Origin: Ruditapes philippinarum | Lineage: Eukaryota | Assembly (NCBI RefSeq): GCF_026571515.1 | Contig: NW_026866079.1 | Location: forward strand, 1-64,000 | Direction: 5' to 3' | DNA: 64,000 nt | Shown: one piece after another, positions 13,139-57,900 of the stretch | How the letters are laid out: the number at the start of each line of letters is the position of its first letter | Position numbering within the stretch: the stretch's first letter is position 1 | Made by a program: the position numbers and the translations under genes | The notes under the pieces: generated by a model | What the model was told of the DNA's origin: nothing | The model's input: only the letters and a program-made list of their open reading frames with translations | Database searches by the model: none

Positions 13139-15153
13139 AAATGCATGATACATGTTCTCCTCATGACCAAATTGAAAGTAAAATATACACTGTATACAAC
13201 ATCAGATGTGTCTCAATACACAATTATTTAACAATAGATCTACCTATCTGACTTTTGTCCAACAGGTTTTATTCAGATAGCAATAACTTATTATATGTGG
13301 TTCATGAACATGTCAACCAGCCAATACAGTCAAACTTGTCAACAAAGGCCACCAAGGGGAAAGTGTAAAAATGGTCTTTGTTCACAGTGATCTCTGTTCA
13401 GCAGATAATGAATAATGATTTTTTTTTTTAAATAATGGATACCAATTTTTTCAGTTATTAGTATATAAGACAAAAAATCACTATTTCTGCCAAAGGGACC
13501 AGAGATCTAGTTCGAGAGTTTGAGTTATACCAAGGTAGAACACAACATAAATTATATAGGAATTTTGATGGTAATGGTCAGTGAGTTCGAGCAAAAGGAG
13601 GAATTCAAGCAATCCAAGTTCGAGCAATCAGAGTTTGAGTGAAAAAAGTTTAACTGTAGTTCTGAAAGACTCGGCTGGTATCTCTTGAGAAATGTACAAG
13701 TTAAGAGTATACAGTCAAACAGAAGATCACCTCTGAATGAAGACCACTTTTAGAGAACCTTTTTATAGTTTAAGCAGAACAAAGTAACCTCGAAATGAAG
13801 GCCATTTGTCTGTTAAAGCCATTTGTTTGGTCTCTCTTTAGGAGGATCTTTGCTCAAAGGTATGAATGTATCTCTATAATTATACAGTGTAACCTGTGCA
13901 AAGCTTTCCTCTTCCAAGCTAATACCATTTTACAGTATTAAAACTCTCTTAACTAAGACTGAACACTTAATGTAATCTCTCTAGGGCAGCACCTCTCAAC
14001 AACAACCTAGATCTTTGTCTTTGAGAGGTCACCGTGTTGCTAGCAGAGGTTGTACTGTATTTTATATAAATCTCAATCACTTTTGAGATCACAAACTCAC
14101 CCTACCTATTATGCACCATATCTGAACTATTTGATCATAAATGTGTTTTTATTACTAGATCATCTCTCAGGTTTTTACATGCTCCAGTGATGACTTTATA
14201 AAGACTGACCTGAGTATATAACTGATAAGTCAATTTCCTCCCTCTACAATTATGTGACCCTAAAATTGTAAGTCTTATTAAGTCTTCCAATTAGTCCACC
14301 AAAAAAACATCATAAAACCATTATAACAATGTGAAGCTGAAAACAATGTTTAAAATACAAGTTGGGAAGGGAAGTCTTAATCATTCTGTTTTCAATGCAG
14401 TAACTGAATAATTTAAAACCACTTATATATCATTTTCTCAATACAGTTAATAATCCTCCAACTAGGTCAACATAAAGTTTAAACATTTACACACCGATAA
14501 ACTAGGGGAGATAACAATTAAAATTTTAAGCACTGTGGGATGAGAACAACTTTAAATTTCAAAAATCGGGACTTTATTTAAATTTTGAACAGTCAAAATA
14601 CTGACTGACAAACACAACACTAACATGCACACTATGCACTAATTATAAGCTAAATAAACAATTGATATCTATTCAGTTTAAACTCGTAACTTTGTGTTGT
14701 AACACAAGGAAGTAAATATCAATTTCAAATTCCACGTATCCAGTGAATATCAACAGCAAAATATTTTTACCTGTGAGACAATTTGAGGATTACAATTTCA
14801 AGGTACAATATTTTTTATTAAATATCTTAATGTCTACAAAAATGACTCTCTTATAAAGGAAACAAGACTGAGAATTATTATTTCATTATGCTTTTTTTTT
14901 TTTTTTTTAAAAAGAAGTTAAAATACATAATATATTTTGATACACAAAGTCATTGTATTATGCACTAAATTAATAGTTGTACTGTTGTTGGCTTGAATCA
15001 CAACACAATGTACCGTTTTATCATTTATTGTTTCTTTCTCAGTGGAATACTGCAAATAATACATTGAATTTTGCACAGGTTATCCTGACATTAACAAATA
15101 TAATATTAAAAAGCAGTAACAAATATTTCTTGTGGGAGAGCCACAATGTTATC

Positions 15154-21062: not shown

Positions 21063-23596
21063 AACTAGAAATGTGTCATCATGCCACGGATGCCCCCGCA
21101 TGCAGCCAAAATTTCAGATGTTATAATATTTAGTTCCAAATTTGTTTGCACAAATTATTTTTTTCATTTTAAGTTCAAAGCCCTTAAAACTTTTCAATGT
21201 TAACACAAACCATTTTCATACAATGTTCAAGGCACTGAAATTATTCAGTCTTAACCTTTTAAAAATAGAATATTTCATATTTGTAGCCCAAAATAATGGC
21301 TTCATACATTTCCAAACTAGAAATGTGTCATCATGCCACGGATGCCCCCGCATGCAGCCAAAATTTCAGACGTTATAATATTTAGTTCCAAATTTGTTTG
21401 CACAAATTATTGTTTTCATTTTTAGTTCAAAGCCCTTAAAACTTTTCAATGTTAACACAAACCATTTTCATACAATGTTCAAGACACTGAAATTATTCAG
21501 TCTTAACCTTTTGAAAATAGCATATTTCATATTTGTAGCCAAAATAATGGCTACATACATTTCCATAAAAGTATGAGTGCTGAAACTGAAAGTTCAAAAT
21601 TTGTCCAATATTCAAGAAAGATAAGTTTGTCCAAAATCATTGAACCACGACCAAATTCAAACTTAAACTGCTTATTTCTAAGATGTATCTATATTATTTT
21701 CAAAGTGAAAGGGACATAACTCTGCCAAAAAATCATCGAACCATGACCAAATTCCAACTTGACCTGCCCATTCCTTTGACATACCCATATGTCAAATTTA
21801 AGTTGAATATGTAACAATGTTGGGTAGATAATGAACAGAAACTGTAAATTTCATATTATTTTCAAAGTGAAAGTATTACTCTGCCAAATATCATTGAACC
21901 ATGACCAAATTCGAACTTGGCCTGGGCATTCCAAAAACATATCCATATGTCAAATTTGAGTTGAATGTGTTGTACTGTTGGGGAGATAATAAACAGAAAC
22001 TGAAAATTTCATATTATTTTCAAAGTAAAAGGAGCATAACTCTGCCAAAAATCATCGAACCATGACCAAATTCGAACTTGACCTGTATTTTCTCATGACA
22101 CATCCATATGTCAAATTTGAGTTGAATGTGTTGTACCGTTGGGGAGATAATGAACGGAAACTGAAATTTTCATATTATTTTCAAAGTAAAAGGGGCATAA
22201 CTCTGCCAAAAATCATCGAACCATAACCGAATTCAAACTTGACCTGTATTTTCTCATGACATATCCATATGTCAAATTTGAGTTGAATGTGTTGTACCGT
22301 TGGGGAGATAATGAACGGAAACTGAAAATTTCATATTAGTTTCAAAGTAAAAGGGCATAACTCTGCCAAAAATCATTGAACCATGACAAAATTCAAACTT
22401 GACCTGTATTTTCTCACGACATATCCATATGTCAAATTTGAGTTGAATATGTGCAACCGTTACTAAGATAATGAACGGAAACTGATGATGACGGAATGAC
22501 AGAATGACGGAATGACAGAAGGACGGAAGGACGGAATGACGGAAGGACAGTACAGGGTAACACTATATGCCCCGGCCATTACATGGCGGGGGCATAAAAA
22601 GTATGAGTGCTAAAACTGAAAGTTCAAAATTTTTCCAACATTCAAGAAAGATAAGTTTGTCCAAAATCATTGAACCGCGACCAAATTCAAACATGAACTG
22701 CTTATTCCTAAGATGTATCTATATTATTTTCAAAGTGAAAGGGACATAACTCTGGCAAAAAATCATCGAACCATGACCAAATTCCAACTTGACCTGCCCA
22801 TTCCTTTGACATATCCATATGTCAAATTTGAGTTGAATATGTAACACAGTTGGGTAGATAATGAACAGAAACTGTAAATTTCATATTATTTTCAAAGTGA
22901 AAGAGGCATTACTCTGCCAAAAATCATTGAACCATGACCAAATTCAAACTTGGCCTGGGCATTCCAAAAACATATCCATATGTCAAATTTGAGTTGAATG
23001 TGTTTCACCGTTGGGGAAATAATAAACAGAAACTGAAAATTTCATATTATTTTCAAATTGAAAGGGGCATTACTCTGCTAAAAATCATTGAACCATGACC
23101 AAATTTGAACTTGCGCATTCCTTTGACGTATCAATATGTCAAGTTTGAATTGAATGTGTTGTACCGTTGGGGAGATAATGAACGGAAACTAAAAATTTCA
23201 TATTATTTTCAAAGTGAAAGGGGCATAACTCTGCCAAAAATCATCGAACCATGACCAAATTCGAACTTGACCTGTATTTCCCCATGACATATCTATATGT
23301 CAAGTTTGAGTTGAATGTGTTGTACCGTTGGGGAGATAATGAACGGAAACTGAAAATTTCATATTATTTTTAAGTAAAAGGGGCATAACTCTGCCAAAAA
23401 TCATCGAACCATGACCAAATTCGAACTTGACCTGTATTTTCTCAAGACATATCCATATGTCGAATTTGAGTTGAATGTGTGCAACCGTTACTAAGATAAT
23501 AAACGGAAAGTGATGATGACGGAATGACAGAATGACGGAAGGACGGAACAGGGTAACACTATATGCCCCGGCCATTACATGGCGGGGGCATAAAAA
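21063..23596 (+). mobile_element. Non-autonomous element with ~159-bp internal array, partly tandem-duplicated
   Basis: Inserted without TSD into the A-run of aagtgtaaaaatggtc (empty site near 13365); 252-bp 5' duplication; two copies of the gacggaat microsatellite and atgcccc...ggggcataaaa end. Confidence 0.85.
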
Positions 23597-24012: not shown

Positions 24013-24769
24013 AAAATTCTGGAAACAAAGTGATCCCTTGGAAGCATTAATCACAACAAAATTACATAAGAATTGCAGACTTGGTTTGATTGAGTCTGTA
24101 CATGAGAGATTATGAATAAGTGCAACACCCCTCACGCCCCCTAGCACTGGCTTAAGCGGTACTCAATTCTCAACACTTAATAGTGCTGGCATCAATGATC
24201 CCGAAGGACCAGAAAATATAACAACACTGAAGTGAAGTACGGGGCAACTTTTTACAGCTGCCACACGGCACTTGACACCTGCTGTTGTGAAGTACAAAAT
24301 TCTGGAAACAAAGTGATCCCTCGGAAGCATTAATCACAACAAAATTACATAAAAATTGCAGACTCGGTTTGATTGAGTCTGTACATGAGGGATTATGAAT
24401 AAGTGCAACATCCCTCACGCCCCTAGCACCGGCTTGAGCGGTACTCAATTCTCAACACTTAATAGTGCTGGCATCAATGATCCCGAAGGACCAGAAAAAT
24501 ATAACAACACTGAAGTGAAGTACGGGGCAACTTTTTACAGCTGCCACACGGCACTTGACACCTGCTGTTGTGAAGTACAAAATTCTGGAAACAAAGTGAT
24601 CCCTCGGAAGCATTAATCACAACAAAATTACATAAAAATTGCAGACTCGGTTTGATTGAGTCTGTACATGAGAGATTATGAATAAGTGCAACATCCCTCA
24701 CGCCCCCTAGCACCGGCTTGAGCAGTACTCAATTCTCAAAACTTAATAGTGCTGGCATCAATAATCCCG
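24013..24769 (-). mobile_element. Head-to-tail 283-bp structured repeat, 2.7 units (retrozyme-like)
   Basis: attctggaaacaaag at 24016, 24299 and 24582; absent from paralogous sites near 13795 and 38450; many hairpins on the minus strand. Confidence 0.8.
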
Positions 24770-27197
24770 TTTGTCTGTAATGGCAGGAAGACCATTTGTC
24801 TGTAAAAGCTATTTGTTTGGTCTGTCTATAGGAGGATTGTTGCTCAAAGGTTTGAATGTATCTCTATATACAGTGAAACCTGTGCAAAGCTATCCTCTTC
24901 CAAGCAAATACCATTTTACAGTATTAAAACTCTCTTAACTAAGACTGAACACTTAATGTAATCTCTCTAGGGCAGCACCTCTCAACAACAACCTAGATCT
25001 TTGTCTCCAAGAGGGTGTTGCTCAGCAGAGGTTGTACTGTATTTTACAAATCTCAATCAATCACCCTACCTATTATGCACTATATCTGAACAATATGATC
25101 ATTACTAGATCATCTCTCATGTTTTTACATGTTCTAGTGATGACTCCTGAGTGAGTGTTACTGATAAGCCAATTTGCTCCCTCTATATGTGATCCCAAAA
25201 GTGATAGTAGTTGATAAATATTGATCAAACTTCAACTTCGAACGTTATGTTAGTCTTATTAACTTTTTCAATTAGTCCACCAAAAACCATCATAAAACCA
25301 TTATAACAACGTGAAGCTGAAGCAATGTTTAAAATACAAGTTGGAAAGGAAAGTCTTAATCATTCTGTTTTTAATGTTGTAACTGAATAATTTAAAACCA
25401 CTTATCATTTTCTCAATACAGTTTATGATTGTCCTACTAGGTCAACATAAAGTTTAAACATTTACACACCGATAAACTAGGGGAGATAACAATTAAAATT
25501 TTAAGCACGGTGGGATAAGAACAATTTTGAATTTCAAAAATCGGGACTTTATTTAAATTCTGAACAGTTAAAATACTGATTGACAAACACAACACTAAAA
25601 TGCACACTATGAACTAGTTATTAGCTAAATAAACAATTAATATCTATTCAGTTTAAACTTGTAACTTCGTGTTGTAACACAAGGAGGTAAATATCAATTT
25701 CAAATTCCACGTATCCAATATCAAAAGAAAATATTTTACATTAGAAACATGTGAGACAATTTAAGGATTACAATTTCAAGGTACAATATTTTTTTTATCA
25801 AATATCTTAATGTCTACAAAACTGACTCTCTTATAAAGGAAACAAGTGAGCATTATTATTTCATTATGATTTTTTTTTTTTCAAAAAAAAAGGAAGTAAA
25901 ATATACATATATTTTGATACACAAAGTCATGGTATTGAAAAACGTCTGGACAGAGCACTCCACTTTTCTCATTGCTATATTACAAATATAACTTAGAAAA
26001 GAAATTTTTTTTTCTGCAAATGAGTTAAGCAGACATACATGTCATTGATAGTCTACAAGAATTTCAAGTTTAAAGTAAATTCATATTTAGTTATAAAATA
26101 ATTTAAAGATTATCTGCCCTTTTGAAAATTAATGGTGTCCTTTCATGACAATAACAAGTACACCAAGTTTGAAGTGAATGACAAGCTATTATACTTGCTG
26201 ATAAAATGGACCTTAGCAAAAATGTTAACCAATGTTTATGTCTGAATGTTAATACTGACAAAAGAGTCATGATAATAACTCCACTTTTTTCTTTGAAAAA
26301 AGAAAAAGTTTAACCTTAATAAAATACTGTTTGCACTAGATCTTTATTAGCCCATAACCTGCTGAACTTCCAGCCCACCTTCTAGAACAGTCCATGATCA
26401 ATTTTGTCGATAAATACTGCATGGACATGACTAGTCACAAGTTTGAGGCCATAGAGCCACTGGGTTGTGAAGTTATTAGTCAAAAACCCATTGGACCTTG
26501 ACCCTAGACCCTGCGAGAGGTCATTTTCTGTCGAAGACAAATGCTTCTACCAAGTATGGTTTTTAAGGTCTCAATGGTTGTTACTGATAAAAAATTGTTC
26601 TGATATTCAAGGTGAATGTTACCTTGAGATTTAAAACTGCAACCCTGAAAGCAATAGGGGTCATGCAGAGGCCAAAACCAATGTACCTACGGCATTTGAC
26701 AGCAAAGGAAACAAAGAGCTATGCCTATTTTTCTTTTTCCATATGATCAAGAGAGAACTGATTTTATCCAGTGATTCTTTTAAGATTTCTATTCCAAATG
26801 GGAAATGTCAAAACAATTCTGGGTATGTCTGCTGTAAATATACTTGCAGACAACTTTGATCTTTGACATCATCTCATCATAGATGATATATATCAATGTA
26901 TTGATATAAAATACATACATATGAGACATACTCTATAATATAGTAATAGCTAATAATCAAAAGAACATCATACATGATAGCAAAATATGTTTTTGATAAC
27001 TAACATGTAATCAGATTCATTTAAACCAGTTTTTTTTAATAATCTTGAATTACTTTACAAAAAAGCAGTATTGAATGAAGATAAACGTAGGATGGTAACG
27101 CCCCCGCCCCTATCCCCCATCTACAAGTACTCACGGCATTAAAGCTTTTAATAATTACACATTATGACATCAACTTTCATCACAATTAAAACAAGTC

Positions 27198-36686: not shown

Positions 36687-39600
36687 TATTGGATACAATT
36701 GTATGATAAAACATTTGTCTTTGTGTTAGACTCCAAGGATAGAAATGATACATGGTATATGATATATGGAAAAGATAGCAGGAGGTTGCTCTACAAGAAA
36801 GTGGTGTTGCAGTATGTCAAGTTTTCCCTGATAAAATGAAGAAGCTGTAAACACTTCAGTTGTTGAAAAACAGGTGCAAACTATGTTCATATCTACAAAT
36901 TGACAAGACTTAACCCATATTCAAACAATGTCAAAAATTTATGATAAATAATAAATTTAATTTGATTTGCAAACATTTAAACATTCAAGATCTTACACTA
37001 TTATGGTCATATGGCCACTGATTGACAGGTGGAGCAAAACCCCTGGTACCCCTGACATGCATTATTTCAGGCAATTAAGTAGAACCACCAACATTCTGTT
37101 AATTAGCTGAACAAATTCCTTGCATGGAGGAACACAAAATATTTGGCAAAATTTGAGACCATATCATCACAGGTCAAGGGGTTTGAAATCTGAGCAACCT
37201 TAACTGCTCAATTGTTATTTAAGAAGGCTTTTAGCTGAATAAATTAGTTGTTCAAAAATTGAACGAGATATTAAAATGATTCTTAAACATGATTGTATTT
37301 CCTTTACTGTGTGAAATTTTAATCAAGTCATGTAATTTTTGTAGTATATTAGCAAATTTGTATTAGACGAAAATATATTTCCCTGATTACTTAGTACCAA
37401 TAAATGTCGTTTTGCGCACATATTTTGATGACTATGTACTTTTCAGTGTGAAAGTCATTCAGCTTTTGGATTGACAGCCTGACATATACTTTTTTTACAT
37501 CGCACCAATGCAGTATAGGTTACAGGGCACGATTCAGCTTTACTGGTCAGTGGTGTAGGAAGACCTTAGGCGCTCTTCTATGAATTATATCTGGCACCAA
37601 TAGGCACCTTAGTAGAACCACTGACATGATGTTGGATAACTTCCTCACACAAAATCCTCACACAAAATCCCTACTGGGATTCAAACCAAATGCCATCAGG
37701 GGCAAGTGGTTTGAAGTTAACAACCTAAACCATTGGACCACAGACGCCCCCGATGCAGATTTTTATCCTGATATGAGTGAATTTTCTCCTCATGACCATG
37801 CTAAAACTGTATACATAATTAGTGTCTCCATACATAATTATTTTACAATAAATCTACTTACTTTTGTCCAACAGGTTTTATTCAGATTCTTGAGCATGTC
37901 AACCCGCAAGTTGACCAAAAAGGTGTGATTTTTAATATTCAACCAAACTTGTCAACAAAGGCCATCGAGGGGAAAGTGTTAAAGTTCCCTTTGTTTGGGG
38001 TATGATTATCATTTTGCTTGATGAGCAATTTTAAAATCGCGGGCGCACAAAACACATGTATCTTTTAAAATCATGTTAACTGATATTTTTAATTATAAGT
38101 ATTAAAGCCAAAAATACAATATTTCTGCCGAACGACCAGAGATCTAGTTCAAGAGTTCGAGCAACCAGTGTTTGAGTGAAACTTAGGTAGAACAACATAG
38201 ATTATATAGGAAAATTTGCTGGTACTGGTCAAGAGTTTGAGAGAAGTGGGGAATTTAAGCAATCCGAGTTTGAGCGATTAGTGTTTGAGTAATATCGTAG
38301 TTGTGAGAAGACTTGGCTGGTATCTATTGAGAAATGTAAAAGTTAACAGTACACGTATGCAGTCAAACTTGTCTTAAAGATCACCTCAGAACAAAGACCA
38401 GTTTAAGACAACCTTTTTTAGTTTAGGCAGAACAAAGTAACCTCGAAATGAAGGCCACTTGTCTGTAAAAGCCAATTGTTTGGTCTCTCTATAGGTTGCT
38501 CTTTGTTCAAAGGTTTGACTGTATCTCTATATACAGTGCCACCTGAACAAAGTTGACCTCTTCAGAGCAAATACAAGTATTAAAACTCTCTTAAATAAAA
38601 CTGAACAATTAATGTAATCTCAATAGGACAGCACCTCTAAGCAACAGCCTACACCTTTTTCTTCGAGAGGGTGTTGCTTAGCAGAAGTTGTACTGTACAT
38701 GTATTTCAATAATCTCAATCACTTTTGAGATCACGCACTCACCGGGTACCTATTATGCACCATATCTGAAGTATTTGATCATATATGTGTTTTTATTACT
38801 AGATCATCTCTTAGGTTTTTACATGTTCTAGTGATGACTTTAAAGACTGACCAGTATTACTCTATATGTGATCCCAAAATTAGTATTTGATAAATATTGA
38901 TCAAACTTCAACTTCTTTATGTAAGTCTTATTAAATCTTCCTATTAGTACACTAAAAAACAACATAAAACCATAAAAACAACGTGAAGCTGAAAACAATG
39001 TTTAGAATGCAAGTTGGGAAGAAAGTCTTAATCATTCTGTTTTTTAATGTTGTAACTGAATGATTTAAAACCACTTATATATCATTTTGTCAATACAGTT
39101 TATGATCATTCTACTAAGTCAACATAAAGTTTAAACATTTACACACCCACAAACTAGGGGAGATAGCAATTTAAATGTTAAGAATTGTGGGATAAGAACA
39201 ACTTTAAATTTCAAAAATCGGGACTTTATTTAAATTTTGAACAGTCAAAATACTGACTGACAAACACGACACTAAAATGCTCACTATGCACTAAAAACAA
39301 TTGATATCTATTCAGTTTAAACTTATACATTTGTGTTGTAACACAAGGAAGTAAATATCAATTTCAAATTCCACGTATCCAGTATCAACAGCAAAATATT
39401 TACATTAGAAACCTGTGAGACAATTTGAGGATTACAATTTCAAGGTACAATATTTTTATTAAATATCTTAATGTCTACAAAAATGACTCTCTTATAAAGG
39501 AAACAAGTGAGCGTTATTATTTCATTATGCTTTTTTCAAAAAAAAGAAAGTTAAATATACATTATATTTTGATACACAAAGTCATGGTATTGAAAAACGT

Positions 39601-43709: not shown

Positions 43710-44200
43710 TTTTTTTATTATGCAATCTACAATAGATAAATACAGAATCCCCAAAGAAAGCCCAACACGGCAAAATTGAAAATGTTGCAGGCTCGGTTTG
43801 ATTGAGCCTGTTCATGGACAGTACTGGAAAGTGCAAGTTACCGTCCACGCCCCCTAGCACCGGCTTAAACAGAATTCAACATTTAAACATGAAAATACTG
43901 AATTTTGAATAATATAGAAATATCAGCGGATGTGTTCATACGGCGGTTATCATGGAACCTTCAATGTGACACTTCCGTGCCATTCCATGAAAAGCGGCGT
44001 AAGGGTCCAAGTAATAAAAAGCGTGTGCCCTAAACGATAAAACAATGGGCGGAACTAAATAAAATGGAATTTTGAAAGGGGATCAGAGGATATGAAGCCT
44101 GCGTATCACAGATAAGACGTCAAAAGACAAATTTAAAAAGCAGGCAACATATCCTAAGGGTGATTCAACATTATTCAAGTAGGAATATTGGAACCACCCA
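43710..44200 (-). other. Structured ~490-bp insert sharing a module with the 283-bp repeat
   Basis: Hairpins gggtg/caccc, ggatatg-gcctgc/gcaggc-catatcc and tcatggaa/ttccatga; shared module at 43785-43868; ends taataaaaaaa on the minus strand. Confidence 0.6.
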
Positions 44201-45060
44201 ACTAGAAAATGCCTAACTACAAAACCTGTGCATAAAAAATTTGCAACTTGCACTCTGTCACAATTAAATCTTTCAAAATTTCAAACTATGAAGTTTAAGT
44301 TACAATTAAATAGAAAATATTCTTTTTGACCTATGGTCTGGACAAAAAAGGAGCAAGAAAAATAACAATAACAAAGGGCAATAACTCAAAAAAAGGAAAA
44401 GTGTAGAATTTATAATTCTTTAGTTTTGCATCTTTATTTATGCAATCTATCTACCGGTGAAGTTCCATGTTGAAATATCAAGTTGTTCAAGTTATGCTCC
44501 AGAAAAAAAGGGACGCACACAAGGACTTTAGCATAACAAAACTGCTGTACTCAAAGTTTTAACAAAACATATTTTGTTATAATGCACGCCTTGCATAACA
44601 TAACATTTGTTACCTTATATTCAGATGATTTCAATAAAAGTGAGAAACAGCCTTTTGTTGTGGTGGTGAAAATAAATGAAAAGCTTTCTTTTAAAAGAGT
44701 GTATTATTTCAAGGTAAAACTAACCATAACTCTTTATCATCTATATATGAGAGAGACTAAAAGAGAATTGGAACGCCACACAAAATACCGAATTCCGGTA
44801 ATACCGAATTAAATGCTAAAATATCGACTTTTCACCTAATGGAATGAACTTTAAAATGACTAATTCATCACTTCACACCAATTTATTTACGATAATAAAT
44901 GGAAAATGTAAGAATCAGCAAAAAAGAGATTTTTGTCTATTTTGTGATCATAATTTCTTCAAACGTCTAGAGGTACTGCTCCAACCCTGTATTGAGTTCA
45001 GTAATCTATTTATACACACAGATTACTTTTATCTTTAAAGGTTATACAAAATTGTCAGAC

Positions 45061-49997: not shown

Positions 49998-52275
49998 AAA
50001 CAAGAGGGCCATGATGGCCCTGAGGTCGCTCACCTGTATATAGGCCCCCCAACCCCAACCCCCCCAACGTTGCAGGGCCAATTTAACCCAAGGGCTTTTA
50101 TTTGCACAAACTCGGTAGACACCCATAAGAAGATGTTTCACGCTAAACATCTAAGCTCTAGCTCATTGGGCTTTATTGAAAGAAGATTTTTTTAAAGTTT
50201 TTACTATACACATATAGTTAAAAACAATGACACCCCTGGGGCCGGGCCAGTTTTGACCCCAGGGCTTTTATTTGAACAAACTTTGTAGACACTTACTAGA
50301 AGATGTTTCATGCTTAATATCTAAACTCTAGCTATTTGGGTTTTTTTCAAAGAAGATTTTTAAGATTTTGCTATACACATATAAAGAAAATCAATGACCC
50401 CCGGGGCAGGGCCAATTTTGACCCCATGTCTTTTATTTGAACAAACTTTGTAGACACTCACTAAAAGATGTTTCATGCTTAATATCTTAACTCTAGCTAT
50501 TTGGGTTTTTTCAAAGAAGATTTTTTAAGTTTTTGCTATACACATATAAGGAAAATCAATGACCCCCGGGCGGTGCCAATTTTGACCCCAGGGCTTTTAT
50601 TTGAACAAACTTGGTAGACACCTATTAGAACATGTTTGATGCTAAATATCTTAGCCATAGCTCTTTGAGTTCTTTAAAAGAAGATTTTTTAAGTTTTTAC
50701 TATATGCATATAGGGAAAATCAATGATCCCCCGGGGCGGGGCCAATTTTGACCCCAGGGCTTTTATTTGAACAAACTTGGTAGACACTTATTAGAACATG
50801 TTTCATGCTAAATATCTTAGCTTTAACTCTTTTGGTTCTTTAAAAGAAGATTTTTTAAGTTTTTACTATATGCATATAGGGAAAATCAATGACCCCCTGG
50901 GGTGGGGCCAATTTTGACCCCAGGGCTTTTATTTAAACAAACTTGGTAGACACCCATTAGAACATGTTTCATGCTAAATATCTTAGCCATAGCTCTTTGA
51001 GTTCTTTAAAAGAAGATTTTTTAAGTTTTTATTATATGCATACAAGGGAAAATCAATGACCTCCGGGGCGGGGCCAATTTTGACCCCCAGGGCTTTTATT
51101 TGAACAAACTTGGTAGTCACCCATTAGAACATGTTTCATGCTAAATATCTTAGCTCTAGCTCTTTTGGTTCTTTAAAAGAAGATTTCTTACGTTTGTACT
51201 ATATGCATATAGGGAAAATCAATGACCCCCCGGGGCGGGGCCAATTTTGACCCCAGGGCTTTTATTTAAACAAACTTGGTAGACACCTATTAGAACATGT
51301 TTCATGCTACAAATCTTAGCTCTAGCTCTTTTGGTTCTTTAAAAGAAGATTTTTTAAGTTTTTACTATATGCATATAGGGAAAATCAATGACCCCCCCCC
51401 CCGGCGGGGCCAATTTTGACCCCAGGGCTTTTATTTGAACAAACTTGGTAGACACTTATTAGAACATGTTTCATGCTAAATATCTTAGCTTTAACTCTTT
51501 TGGTTCTTTAAAAGAAGATTTTTTAAGTTTTTACTTTATGCATATAGGGAAAATCAATGACCCCCCTGGGGCCGGGCCAATTTTGACCCCAGGGCTTTTA
51601 TTTGAACAAACTTGGTAGACACCTATTAGAACATGTTTGATGCTAAATATCTTAGCCATAGCTCTTTGAGTTCTTTAAAAGAAGATTTTTTAAGTTTTTA
51701 CTATATGCATATAGGGAAAATCAATGACCCCCCGGGGCGGGGCCAATTTTGACCTAAGGGCTTTTATTTGAACAAACTTGGTAGACACCTATTAGAACAT
51801 GTTTCATGCTAAATATCTAAGCTGTAGCTCTTTTGGTTCTTTAAAAGAAGATTTTTAAAGTTTTTACTATATGTATATAGGGAAAATCAATGACCCCCCG
51901 GGGCGGGGCCAATTTTGACCCCAGGGTTTTTATTTGAACAAACTTGGTAGACACTTACTAGAAGATGTTTCATGCCAAATATCTAAGCTCTAGCTCTTAT
52001 GGTTTTTTAAAAGAAGATATTTAAAGTTTTTTCTTTCGGTTGCCGTGGCAACCAGAGTTCTGCATGGAATTAAATTCTTTGAACAATTTTTAAAGGTGAC
52101 CACCAAAGGAACATTCCTGTGAAGTTTGGATGAAATTGGCTCAGTGGTTTATGAGGAGATGTCATTTAAAGTAAAAGTTTACGGACGGACGCCGGACGGA
52201 CGGACGACGGACGGACGCCGGACGAAAAGCGATAACAAAAGCTCACCCTGTCACTTTGTGACAGGTGAGCTAAAA
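49998..52275 (+). mobile_element. Young element with about 12 near-identical ~166-bp internal repeats
   Basis: aacaagagggccatgatggccctgaggtcgctcacctg ... gctcaccctgtcactttgtgacaggtgagctaaaaa; unit gaaaatcaatgacccccggggcggggccaattttgacccc; related units at 56820-57283. Confidence 0.88.
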
Positions 52276-56125: not shown

Positions 56126-56583
56126 CAGCACTATTAAGTGTTGAGAATTGAGTTCTGCTCAAGCCGGTGCTTAGGGACGTGAGAGATGTTGCACTTATTC
56201 ATTATCCCTCATGTATAGACTTAATTAAACCGAGTCTGCAATTTTCATGTAATTTTGTTGTGATTTATGCTTTCGAGGGATCACTTTGTTTCCAGATTAT
56301 TTATACTTCACAACAGCAGGTGTCAAGTTCTGTGTGGCAGCTGTAAAAAGTTACCCATACTTCACTTCAGTGATGTTATATTTTTTTGGTCTTTCGGGAT
56401 CATTGATGCCAGCACTATTAAGTGTTGAGAATTGAGCAGCGCTCAAGCCGGTGCTGGGGGGGGGGGTGAGGGGTGTTGCACTTATTAATTATCCCTCATG
56501 TACAGACCCAACCAAACCGATTCTGCAATTTTCATGTAATTTTGATGTGATAAATGCTTCCGAGGGATCACTTTGTTTCCAGA
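56126..56583 (+). mobile_element. Second insertion of the 283-bp structured repeat, 1.6 units
   Basis: Reverse complement of 24013-24769; interrupts an unrelated tandem array; agatgt occurs at both junctions. Confidence 0.8.
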
Positions 56584-57900
56584 TGTGTTTCTATTTCAGC
56601 TCTCTTGACCCCTAAAAGGGGCCAAAAAATTTTGCAATGGTAAGAGCAAATTTAGGTGTGACAGTCACAAGGATGCTACAGACCAATTTTGAAGTGAATC
56701 TGTCCAGTTGTTTCAGAGAAGAAGATGAATGCATGTTGACGAATGACAACGGACGCCTGAGCATCCCCTTTTGATACTAATAGCTCACCCTGAACCTTCG
56801 GAACTAATGAGCTAATACGGACAAAGGAAAATCAATGATCCCCCTGGGGCAGGACCAATTTTGACCCCGGGGCTTTTATTTGGGCAAACTTGGTACATTT
56901 ACTAGAAGATGTTTCATGCTCTAGCTATTTGAGTTTTTTTAAAAGAGATTTTTTACGTTCTTTTTATATACATATAAGGGAAATCATTGACCCCCGGGGT
57001 AGGGCCAATTTTGACCCTAGGGCTTTTATTTGAAAAACTTGGTAGACACTCACAAGAAGATGTTTCATGCCGAATATCTAATCTCTAGCTCTTTGGATTT
57101 TTTTTTTAAAGAATTCTTTTTAAGTTTTTTTCTTTAGCCTGCCATGGCAACCAGAGTTCTGCATGGAATAAAAATCTTTGATCAATTTTAAAAGGTGACC
57201 ACCAAAGGAACATTCCTGTGAAGGTTGGATGAAACTGGCTTAGTGGTTTATGAGGAAATGTCATTTAAAGTAAAAGTTTACGGCTTACCTTGTCGAAATA
57301 ACCAAATCTTTCCAGTCTCATGATAAAACCAGATTAAGTCTTTTAATTGAATGGGATAAATTTTCTCTAGATTTAGCAGACAACAACCAATCCACATTAA
57401 TATCTACACTTTTTCTTTAAAAAATAAAACAAACATAACAATAGAACTAATATTTCACTAAAGATGACACAGGATTGCCAAATTGATACCCCCACATGAC
57501 ACAGGGTATTAAGTAGTGCAATTTATCATTTCGTTTAAAAGTTAATATTTTAGGGCAGAAACAAAATGTTCAAATCATGACCTTCAAGGGTGACGTTAAG
57601 CCTGCATTATTGCAATCAGAGTGTTTGAACATTGCCTTGCTGAGTTGAACTTACACGCCAAGAGATTGAAAAATCTTTCCAGTCTTATAGGATTTATAAA
57701 GTGGACATGATGAGACGGATGGACCGAACAACTGATTGACCGACATGACATATTCATTCCAGTATCCCCTCTTCCATATCATGTTTAGGGGAAGTAATAA
57801 TTAAACAAACATAACTTTGTATATATAAGACTTTAATGTTTACAAATATCAAAAAAATTAAATTAAATTACACGTACATGTAATATTAATACAAAAATAA

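Follow-up and report, generated by a model that had tools for sequence, protein, structure and literature searches.

A young 283-nt non-coding repeat family of the Manila clam that inserts as head-to-tail arrays with one fixed end and no hammerhead

Insertions of a 283-bp unit in the window

The window analysed here, the first 64,000 nucleotides of contig NW_026866079.1 of the Ruditapes philippinarum assembly GCF_026571515.1, contains two head-to-tail arrays of a 283-bp unit, hereafter family A, and one copy of a related element, family B. The first array (the 24k array, 24013-24769; period 283, 2.7 copies, 97% matches by Tandem Repeats Finder) lies on the minus strand and consists of a 5'-truncated first unit that forms the ragged 5' end of the insertion (24579..24769, unit positions 94-283), a full middle unit that serves as the 283-nt reference (24296..24578; on the RNA sense strand it starts with GUACUUCAC and ends with CCAGAAUUUU), and a full 3'-most unit (24013..24295, unit positions 1-283) with its fixed 3' end ...CCAGAATTTT at 24013. 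The older array (the 56k array, about 56126..56584, plus strand, 1.6 units, 91-93% identity) sits within a 132-bp tandem repeat and is resolved by BLAST into two pieces, 56126-56296 (unit positions 109-278) and 56304-56583 (positions 2-278). Tandem Repeats Finder and BLAST agree on the period and copy numbers that an earlier note on this DNA had given for both arrays.

That note also held that the two arrays, read on the minus strand at 24k and on the plus strand at 56k, start at different points and end at the same one. The starts do differ (unit positions 94 and 109), and both arrays reach ...GGGATCACTTTGTTTCCAGA, but only the 24k array continues to ...CCAGAATTTT; the 56k array ends ~5-7 nt earlier, in ...CCAGAT. 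The flanks of the 24k array are repeats, and they are joined directly in two paralogs of the site (13795..13797 and 38448..38450, joined at 13795/13797 and 38448/38450); therefore the 24k block is an insertion and the unit is mobile, as had been proposed. Comparison of the filled site with the two empty paralogs reveals no target-site duplication of more than 2 nt. The empty sites lack a 16-nt filler (24770..24785) that occupies the 5' junction, and of this filler 11 nt copy target sequence 13 nt away. The family B copy in the window (43725..44216, minus strand, positions 144-633) is 5'-truncated and has in common with family A a structured 3' module.

The unit had been described as lacking both a credible ORF and terminal inverted repeats, and neither was found: no ORF reaches 100 amino acids, and a search for terminal inverted repeats was negative. 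ARAGORN identified no tRNA-like part in family A. A coding element, a terminal-inverted-repeat transposon and a tRNA-derived SINE were rejected on these respective grounds.

Abundance, ends and sizes of family A insertions

A search of the Manila clam assembly (1.41 Gb, 15,874 contigs) with the unit (GC ~0.40; on the sense strand, minus at 24k, it begins GTACTTCAC and finishes CCAGAATTTT) gave 2972 first-look candidates, and all scored matches are 95-98% identical. In two DNA-like libraries ~0.3% of letters match family A, corresponding roughly to ~10^4 units, and depth over the 3' half of the unit is ~2x that over the 5' half, as expected from 5' truncation.

Array ends were read in two samples, the first selected for full-length units and the second drawn with a 65-nt 3'-end probe. 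Almost all arrays of the first sample (27 independent loci, 0.75 to 7.8 units) end at unit position 281-283, with scattered starts. In the second, 24 of 32 places are a single 127-bp fragment (positions 157-283) inside an unrelated amplified transposon-like family, and the seven remaining independent insertions (0.30 to 2.25 units) end again at 281-283. The tally of copy ends across the genome that the earlier note had recommended, carried out here on a census of ~38 pooled independent insertions and not on the whole genome, thus gives one end fixed at unit position 281-283 and the other random, over sizes of 0.3 to 7.8 units. The 5' starts of 37 insertions are uniform over the unit (chi-square p=0.28); two of the 37 lie at unit position 1, and this lack of excess argues against a monomeric linear template. 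Insertions longer than one unit make up ~27 of ~38 (5 of 8 in the less biased sample alone), and insertion lengths are continuous, not whole-number multiples of the unit.

One end fixed to the base and the other random is not what would be expected of an element copied at the DNA level, either as satellite DNA via extrachromosomal circles or as a tandem repeat borne by a Helitron or Helentron. Helitrons and Helentrons have 5'-TC and 3' hairpin plus CTRR termini and insert at AT or TT. Family A lacks defined 5'-TC and 3'-CTRR termini as well as terminal inverted repeats, and the strand asymmetry and compensatory changes of its predicted fold, described below, point to selection on RNA. A DNA-level origin, for which the very high DNA abundance in two libraries and the profusion of 130-170-bp tandem arrays in the window and in bivalve genomes generally can be cited, is therefore regarded as highly improbable.

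Unit junctions, terminal T-runs and target sites

Of 52 unit-to-unit junctions 51 are invariant, reading AA+T4 in 41 of 42 cases in one subfamily and A+T5 in 10 of 10 in the other, whereas the outer 3' terminal T-run varies from T3 to T10, with at least two extra T at the outer end of 10 of 28 insertions versus 10% expected (P=3e-4). Separate linear RNAs with ragged U-tails would give variable junctions, so the invariance of the junctions indicates a template that is continuous across them. This points to a concatemeric transcript or a circle, with a variable terminal T-run that reflects the target; the data fit the circle as well as the concatemer. Other U-runs inside the unit are unused as array ends. 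The positioning of the enzyme must thus depend on a further feature, for which the adjacent conserved structure is the most plausible candidate.

Three target sites were resolved, none of them with a duplication: that of the 24k array, that of a family B copy within the 3' UTR of a Penelope element, and that of a family A fragment in another transposon, the carrier described at the end, for which the same contig supplies an empty paralog. The last two lie at target T-runs, with overlap and without duplication.

Fixed 3' ends and 5' truncation are also a signature of LINEs, and microhomology priming at a homopolymer run resembles that of L1; family A could accordingly be a LINE-dependent, SINE-like element, its 3' module recognised by a LINE reverse transcriptase and its multimers produced by template jumping or by later unequal crossing-over. 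Bivalves are reported to have SINEs in tandem arrays (PMC11481361), and no Penelope partner was found among the seven canonical families sampled. Several features of the arrays speak against a LINE: ~27 of ~38 insertions exceed one unit with continuous lengths; the junctions are exact, without the bases gained or lost that are usual for end-to-end jumps; there is no tRNA, 5S or 7SL head (ARAGORN, Rfam), and poly(A) and microsatellite tails are lacking, as are target-site duplications; and unequal crossing-over cannot yield a common 3' end together with a random 5' phase. Dependence on a LINE is judged unlikely.

A different account, closest to that of the earlier note, makes family A a hammerhead-less retrozyme: an unrecognised self-cleaving motif, or else a nuclease of the host, would cut tandem transcripts to 283-nt monomers, which would then be circularised and reverse-transcribed by rolling circle. 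Invariant junctions with no excess of position-1 starts fit an endless template, and the units of two arrays (L007 and L021) are 100% identical within each array and unlike those of all other loci, as one re-read template would give. The arrays reach 7.8 units, and copying of only linear concatemers should shrink the family. The longest array itself (L025:332-2547) fits less well, for it is an irregular mix of two variants (296 nt and 282 nt, each internally identical, in the order X Y X X Y X Y from the 3' end) that a single circle does not explain. The remaining evidence on this account comes from the fold, the ribozyme searches and the transcripts, which are taken up in turn below.

Family B copies repeatedly carry nested arrays of family A (L026:1218-1981, L027:1501-1918, L018:1467-1783, L011:3148-3228), at the same two spots of family B, a CTTTCTTT tract near its 3' end and a GGTTTGATTG loop on its antisense strand. 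An apparent recurrent break at unit position 211 results from this nesting. The upstream flanks of family A are family B sequence in at least seven of 43 cases.

Predicted RNA structure and the related family B

The strand that the earlier note had chosen as the sense strand folds far better than its complement (-104.8 versus -73.2 kcal/mol; z -7.2 versus -2.6 against dinucleotide shuffles), and circular folding gives the same asymmetry (z -7.6 sense versus -2.4 complement). This compact, strand-specific fold would also suit a circular RNA. Of the six hairpins proposed from inspection, five appear in the minimum-free-energy fold, in which G-U pairs account for 12 of 95; the UGGUCC/GGAUCA and CAGCACU/AGUGUUG segments go instead into a longer-range helix.

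Family B is a 630-nt relative (629/630 nt) with the same architecture and 3724 first-look candidates, and it occurs at many family A loci; both families are young (97-98% identity). The two have in common a 5' module (family A positions ~25-110) and a 3' module (~128-283), between which family B has ~370 nt extra, so that family A is nearly a minimal form, consisting of these two modules. The families diverge in their last 30 nt and their first 20 nt. Three stems are kept from A to B with changed sequence: GUGAGGGAU/AUCCCUCAU becomes GUGGACGGUA/UACCGUUCAU, CAGACUC/GAGUCUG becomes CAGGCUC/GAGCCUG, and UGGUCC/GGAUCA becomes CGAUC/GAUCG. An alignment of family A, old family A, family B and two older relatives has 31 consensus pairs, of which 10 show changes on both sides that preserve the pair. 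These compensatory changes provide good but not overwhelming support for an RNA under selection, the independent lineages being few. Several single-stranded blocks are also conserved in sequence across A and B; they would fit a protein-binding site, and taken alone they leave room for a catalytic core.

Older relatives of the 3' module of A and B, 65-75% identical, occur at L071:12-176 (minus), L023:455-600 and L012:20-150 (minus); thus the superfamily predates the young families A and B.

Searches for ribozymes

Rfam gives no match at gathering thresholds on the whole window, and neither the family A array nor a family B tandem has a relevant match at E up to 10. The known self-cleaving classes that the earlier note had listed for such a search (twister, twister-sister, pistol, hatchet and HDV-like) found no match at this level, nor did the hairpin, VS and hovlinc ribozymes. 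This search has limited sensitivity to minimal variants, as seen from its failed positive control, an obvious minimal hammerhead of Penelope elements that went unreported at the gathering score in two families and at E up to 10 in one. It was consequently replaced by a hand-written descriptor (CUGANGA / helix II / GAAA), which recovers the hammerheads of Penelope families i and ii and detects none on either strand of A or B, even when one core mismatch is allowed. Since the descriptor finds the Penelope hammerheads, the absence of hammerheads from A and B is real, and the earlier statement that family A has no CUGANGA...GAAA arrangement on either strand stands. An HDV-like fold starting from unit position 1 was rejected by eye: positions 1-6 can pair with 23-28, and the 16 nt between are too few for P2 and P3.

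The Penelope-like elements of the clam carry, in at least four families, a minimal type I hammerhead 45-80 nt before the 3' end, composed of CUGAUGA or CUGAAGA, a 5-6-bp helix II, GAAA(C) and a palindromic loop (L033:2570-2610; L040, about 2540-2580; L061, reverse strand, 1204-1235; L062-L069).

These negative results, for both A and B and with a descriptor that detects the Penelope hammerheads, weigh against a circularised monomer. So does the junction context, which is unconserved between A and B except for the U-run and thus speaks against a common cleavage site there. The specific proposal of the earlier note, a circular RNA template cut by a different self-cleaving motif, is unsupported.

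Transcript evidence

Two of four raw-read runs were usable as RNA-seq, with 590 and 1151 family A reads, ~0.01% of reads, a share ~50-fold under that of family A in the DNA-like libraries. Between 85 and 89% of the matching reads continue into unrelated sequence, often one specific flank, and the signal looks like passive transcription of copies within host transcripts. The strand-specific transcript expected from the earlier account did not appear: the two runs, in which small and circular RNAs may be lost as they are from poly(A)-type libraries, show neither strand bias nor pile-ups of molecule beginnings or ends. Within that limit, low, flank-linked reads without molecule ends add to the case against 283-nt circles, and the account in which tandem transcripts are cut to monomers and circularised seems quite unlikely overall. 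In its broader form, with RNAs of 283 and 630 nt released from concatemers and circularised by an undescribed motif or a host pathway, and both A and B as hammerhead-less retrozymes copied by rolling circle from a start at an internal U-tract, it is doubtful to at least the same degree; if it were true, the conserved blocks AAGCCGGUGCUAGGGGCGUG and CUCAAUCAAACCGAG would be a new catalytic or ligase-recruiting core and not merely a binding site for reverse transcriptase.

The other two runs, X21 and X22, are recorded as transcriptomic cDNA. Their reads are broken at every GATC and rejoined to unrelated or opposite-strand sequence, with equal strands and very high depth, and they behave like proximity-ligation (Hi-C type) DNA libraries; they were left out of the expression evidence and used as the DNA-like libraries. 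Joints in reads that step back 283 nt were dismissed as an artefact of a 60-nt overlap in the reference, without meaning. Fourteen assemblies guessed to be RNA (9 studies) contain ~60% of sampled words.

Penelope-like elements as possible partners

Frequent 5' truncation together with partial tandems is a hallmark of Penelope-like elements. Family A displays a fixed 3' end with frequent 5' truncation and partial head-to-tail tandems of the pseudo-LTR type. A Pfam search identified 531 GIY-YIG candidates in the genome, and the search for a partner covered seven canonical (C-terminal GIY-YIG) Penelope families. Among these seven families no autonomous partner was found: the A/B module is absent from their 3' regions (BLAST; alignment versus shuffles, p ~0.08; covariance model R1), and family A has no 3'-terminal similarity to any of them. 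The 3' ends of four of the seven were read, and all four have a minimal hammerhead there, which A and B are without. An inverted 5'-truncated copy adjoining the 5' end is frequent, not universal, in Penelope insertions; an inverted 5'-truncated partner copy accompanies 0 of ~38 family A insertions, and one head-to-head case is known for family B (C5814).

Family A or B sequence near Penelope elements was in each case set aside as a nested or neighbouring insertion and not a part of the element, and where the family B tail appeared to resemble Penelope family i, the similarity was not significant. Most copies of Penelope family iii (L047:2443-2544) end ~85 nt before a period-2 self-complementary simple repeat, which suggests that the insertion of this family is associated with microsatellites.

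Proposed mechanism

The template of family A is the structured RNA of the strand picked out in the earlier note, and synthesis begins at the U4 tract that ends the unit. The explanation favoured here is that family A is a non-coding, non-autonomous retroposon with a structured RNA template and one cDNA start, copied probably by a Penelope-type enzyme; as a whole this is considered likely. Its parts differ in strength: the attribution to Penelope, taken alone, is about evenly balanced, and RNA-mediated copying with a fixed 3' end is much firmer.

From the U4 tract closing the unit, reverse transcription proceeds along a continuous template for one unit length or several and stops anywhere; one start and a random stop together produce head-to-tail arrays, a fixed 3' end, a random 5' end and no target-site duplication. 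Priming may come from the bottom strand of a T-run target, nicked so that its A-rich 3' end anneals to the U-tract, in a form of target-primed reverse transcription, and the template would be either a concatemeric transcript or a circle. The hairpin modules common to A and B are candidates for the structure recognised by the reverse transcriptase. This enzyme may be supplied by a Penelope-like element, as suggested by the partial tandems with 5' truncation that are the hallmark of the class.

Comparison with known systems

The defining features of metazoan non-LTR retrozymes are a type I hammerhead in each unit and an abundance of monomer RNAs, both circular and linear (Cervera and de la Pena 2020, PMC7229834). 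Family A shares with them dispersed head-to-tail arrays, from dimers to multimers, of a non-coding, AT-rich unit of ~300 bp (within the ~170-400 bp of retrozyme units), a highly structured RNA and, in a bivalve, thousands of copies, but differs in having no hammerhead and no sign of unit-length RNA in two RNA-seq runs, which are possibly blind to small or circular RNA. Animal retrozymes have been proposed to be non-autonomous Penelope derivatives (2026 preprint, 10.64898/2026.07.22.740005).

Penelope-like insertions exhibit 5' truncation and partial tandems, Naiads are without hammerheads, and non-autonomous Chlamys elements form multicopy head-to-tail insertions (PMC8557442). Similar to the Chlamys-derived MRC1 and to Naiads (Craig et al. 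2021, PMC8557442), family A combines 5' truncation, partial tandems and multicopy head-to-tail insertion with the lack of a canonical hammerhead and, as in other invertebrates including clams, very high copy numbers. In lacking a hammerhead it resembles this Naiad/Chlamys branch and its non-autonomous derivatives, not the classical animal retrozymes. Unlike family A, for which none was found, MRC1-type elements have the 3' ends of an identified autonomous family; their target bias is towards microsatellites instead of T-runs, and inverted partner copies are rare or absent in A and B. The tandem-like SINE arrays of bivalves (PMC11481361) are likewise direct arrays of short non-coding retroposons in clam genomes. 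Those SINEs, however, are tRNA-derived, have conserved central domains and occur mostly as single copies, with arrays ascribed to recombination, whereas family A is without a tRNA head and forms its multimers as it inserts.

Family A lacks the hammerhead that defines retrozymes, has the architecture of Penelope insertions and shows no sequence kinship to the seven Penelope families sampled; the most fitting place for it is among Penelope-type non-autonomous elements, as a variant without a hammerhead. Added here to what is known of such elements are a near-minimal family of 283 nt, exact internal junctions versus variable terminal T-runs, a preference for T-runs, hammerhead controls, and passenger copies in a transposon. 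Animal retrozymes and Penelope-like elements both insert head-to-tail, and the need for RNA circles made by hammerheads is still debated; family A, a tiny element of 283 nt that is also very young and very abundant, produces such strings with no hammerhead at all. Testable rules for the start of reverse transcription follow from the exact junctions between its units and from the variable T-run at its end, and A and B together narrow the cis-acting RNA to two short structured modules, a handy substrate for finding the reverse transcriptase and for probing whether any circle takes part. Family A with its passenger copies also makes up a noticeable share of those clam repeats that would go unclassified, or be labelled satellite DNA, with standard libraries.

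The carrier transposon and other tandem arrays

The passenger copies derive from a transposon-like carrier family (L073:212-1231; L105, G000:C15089:51366-58800), whose coding region holds the 127-bp piece of family A (positions 157-283; L073:775-901) at a T6 run, with no duplication. An inverted paralog of the carrier on the same contig is without the family A insert. The broken carrier copy has been amplified and, with the same flanks and 96-98% identity, accounts for 24 of the best 32 matches to the family A 3' end.

The window also contains tandem arrays of 130-170-bp units at 21691-23548, 50075-52031 and many other positions (Tandem Repeats Finder), and short (ATGACGGA)n or (ACGG)n microsatellites come after some of them. 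This layout of array plus microsatellite recalls the Helentron-type elements of oysters, which reportedly carry satellites.
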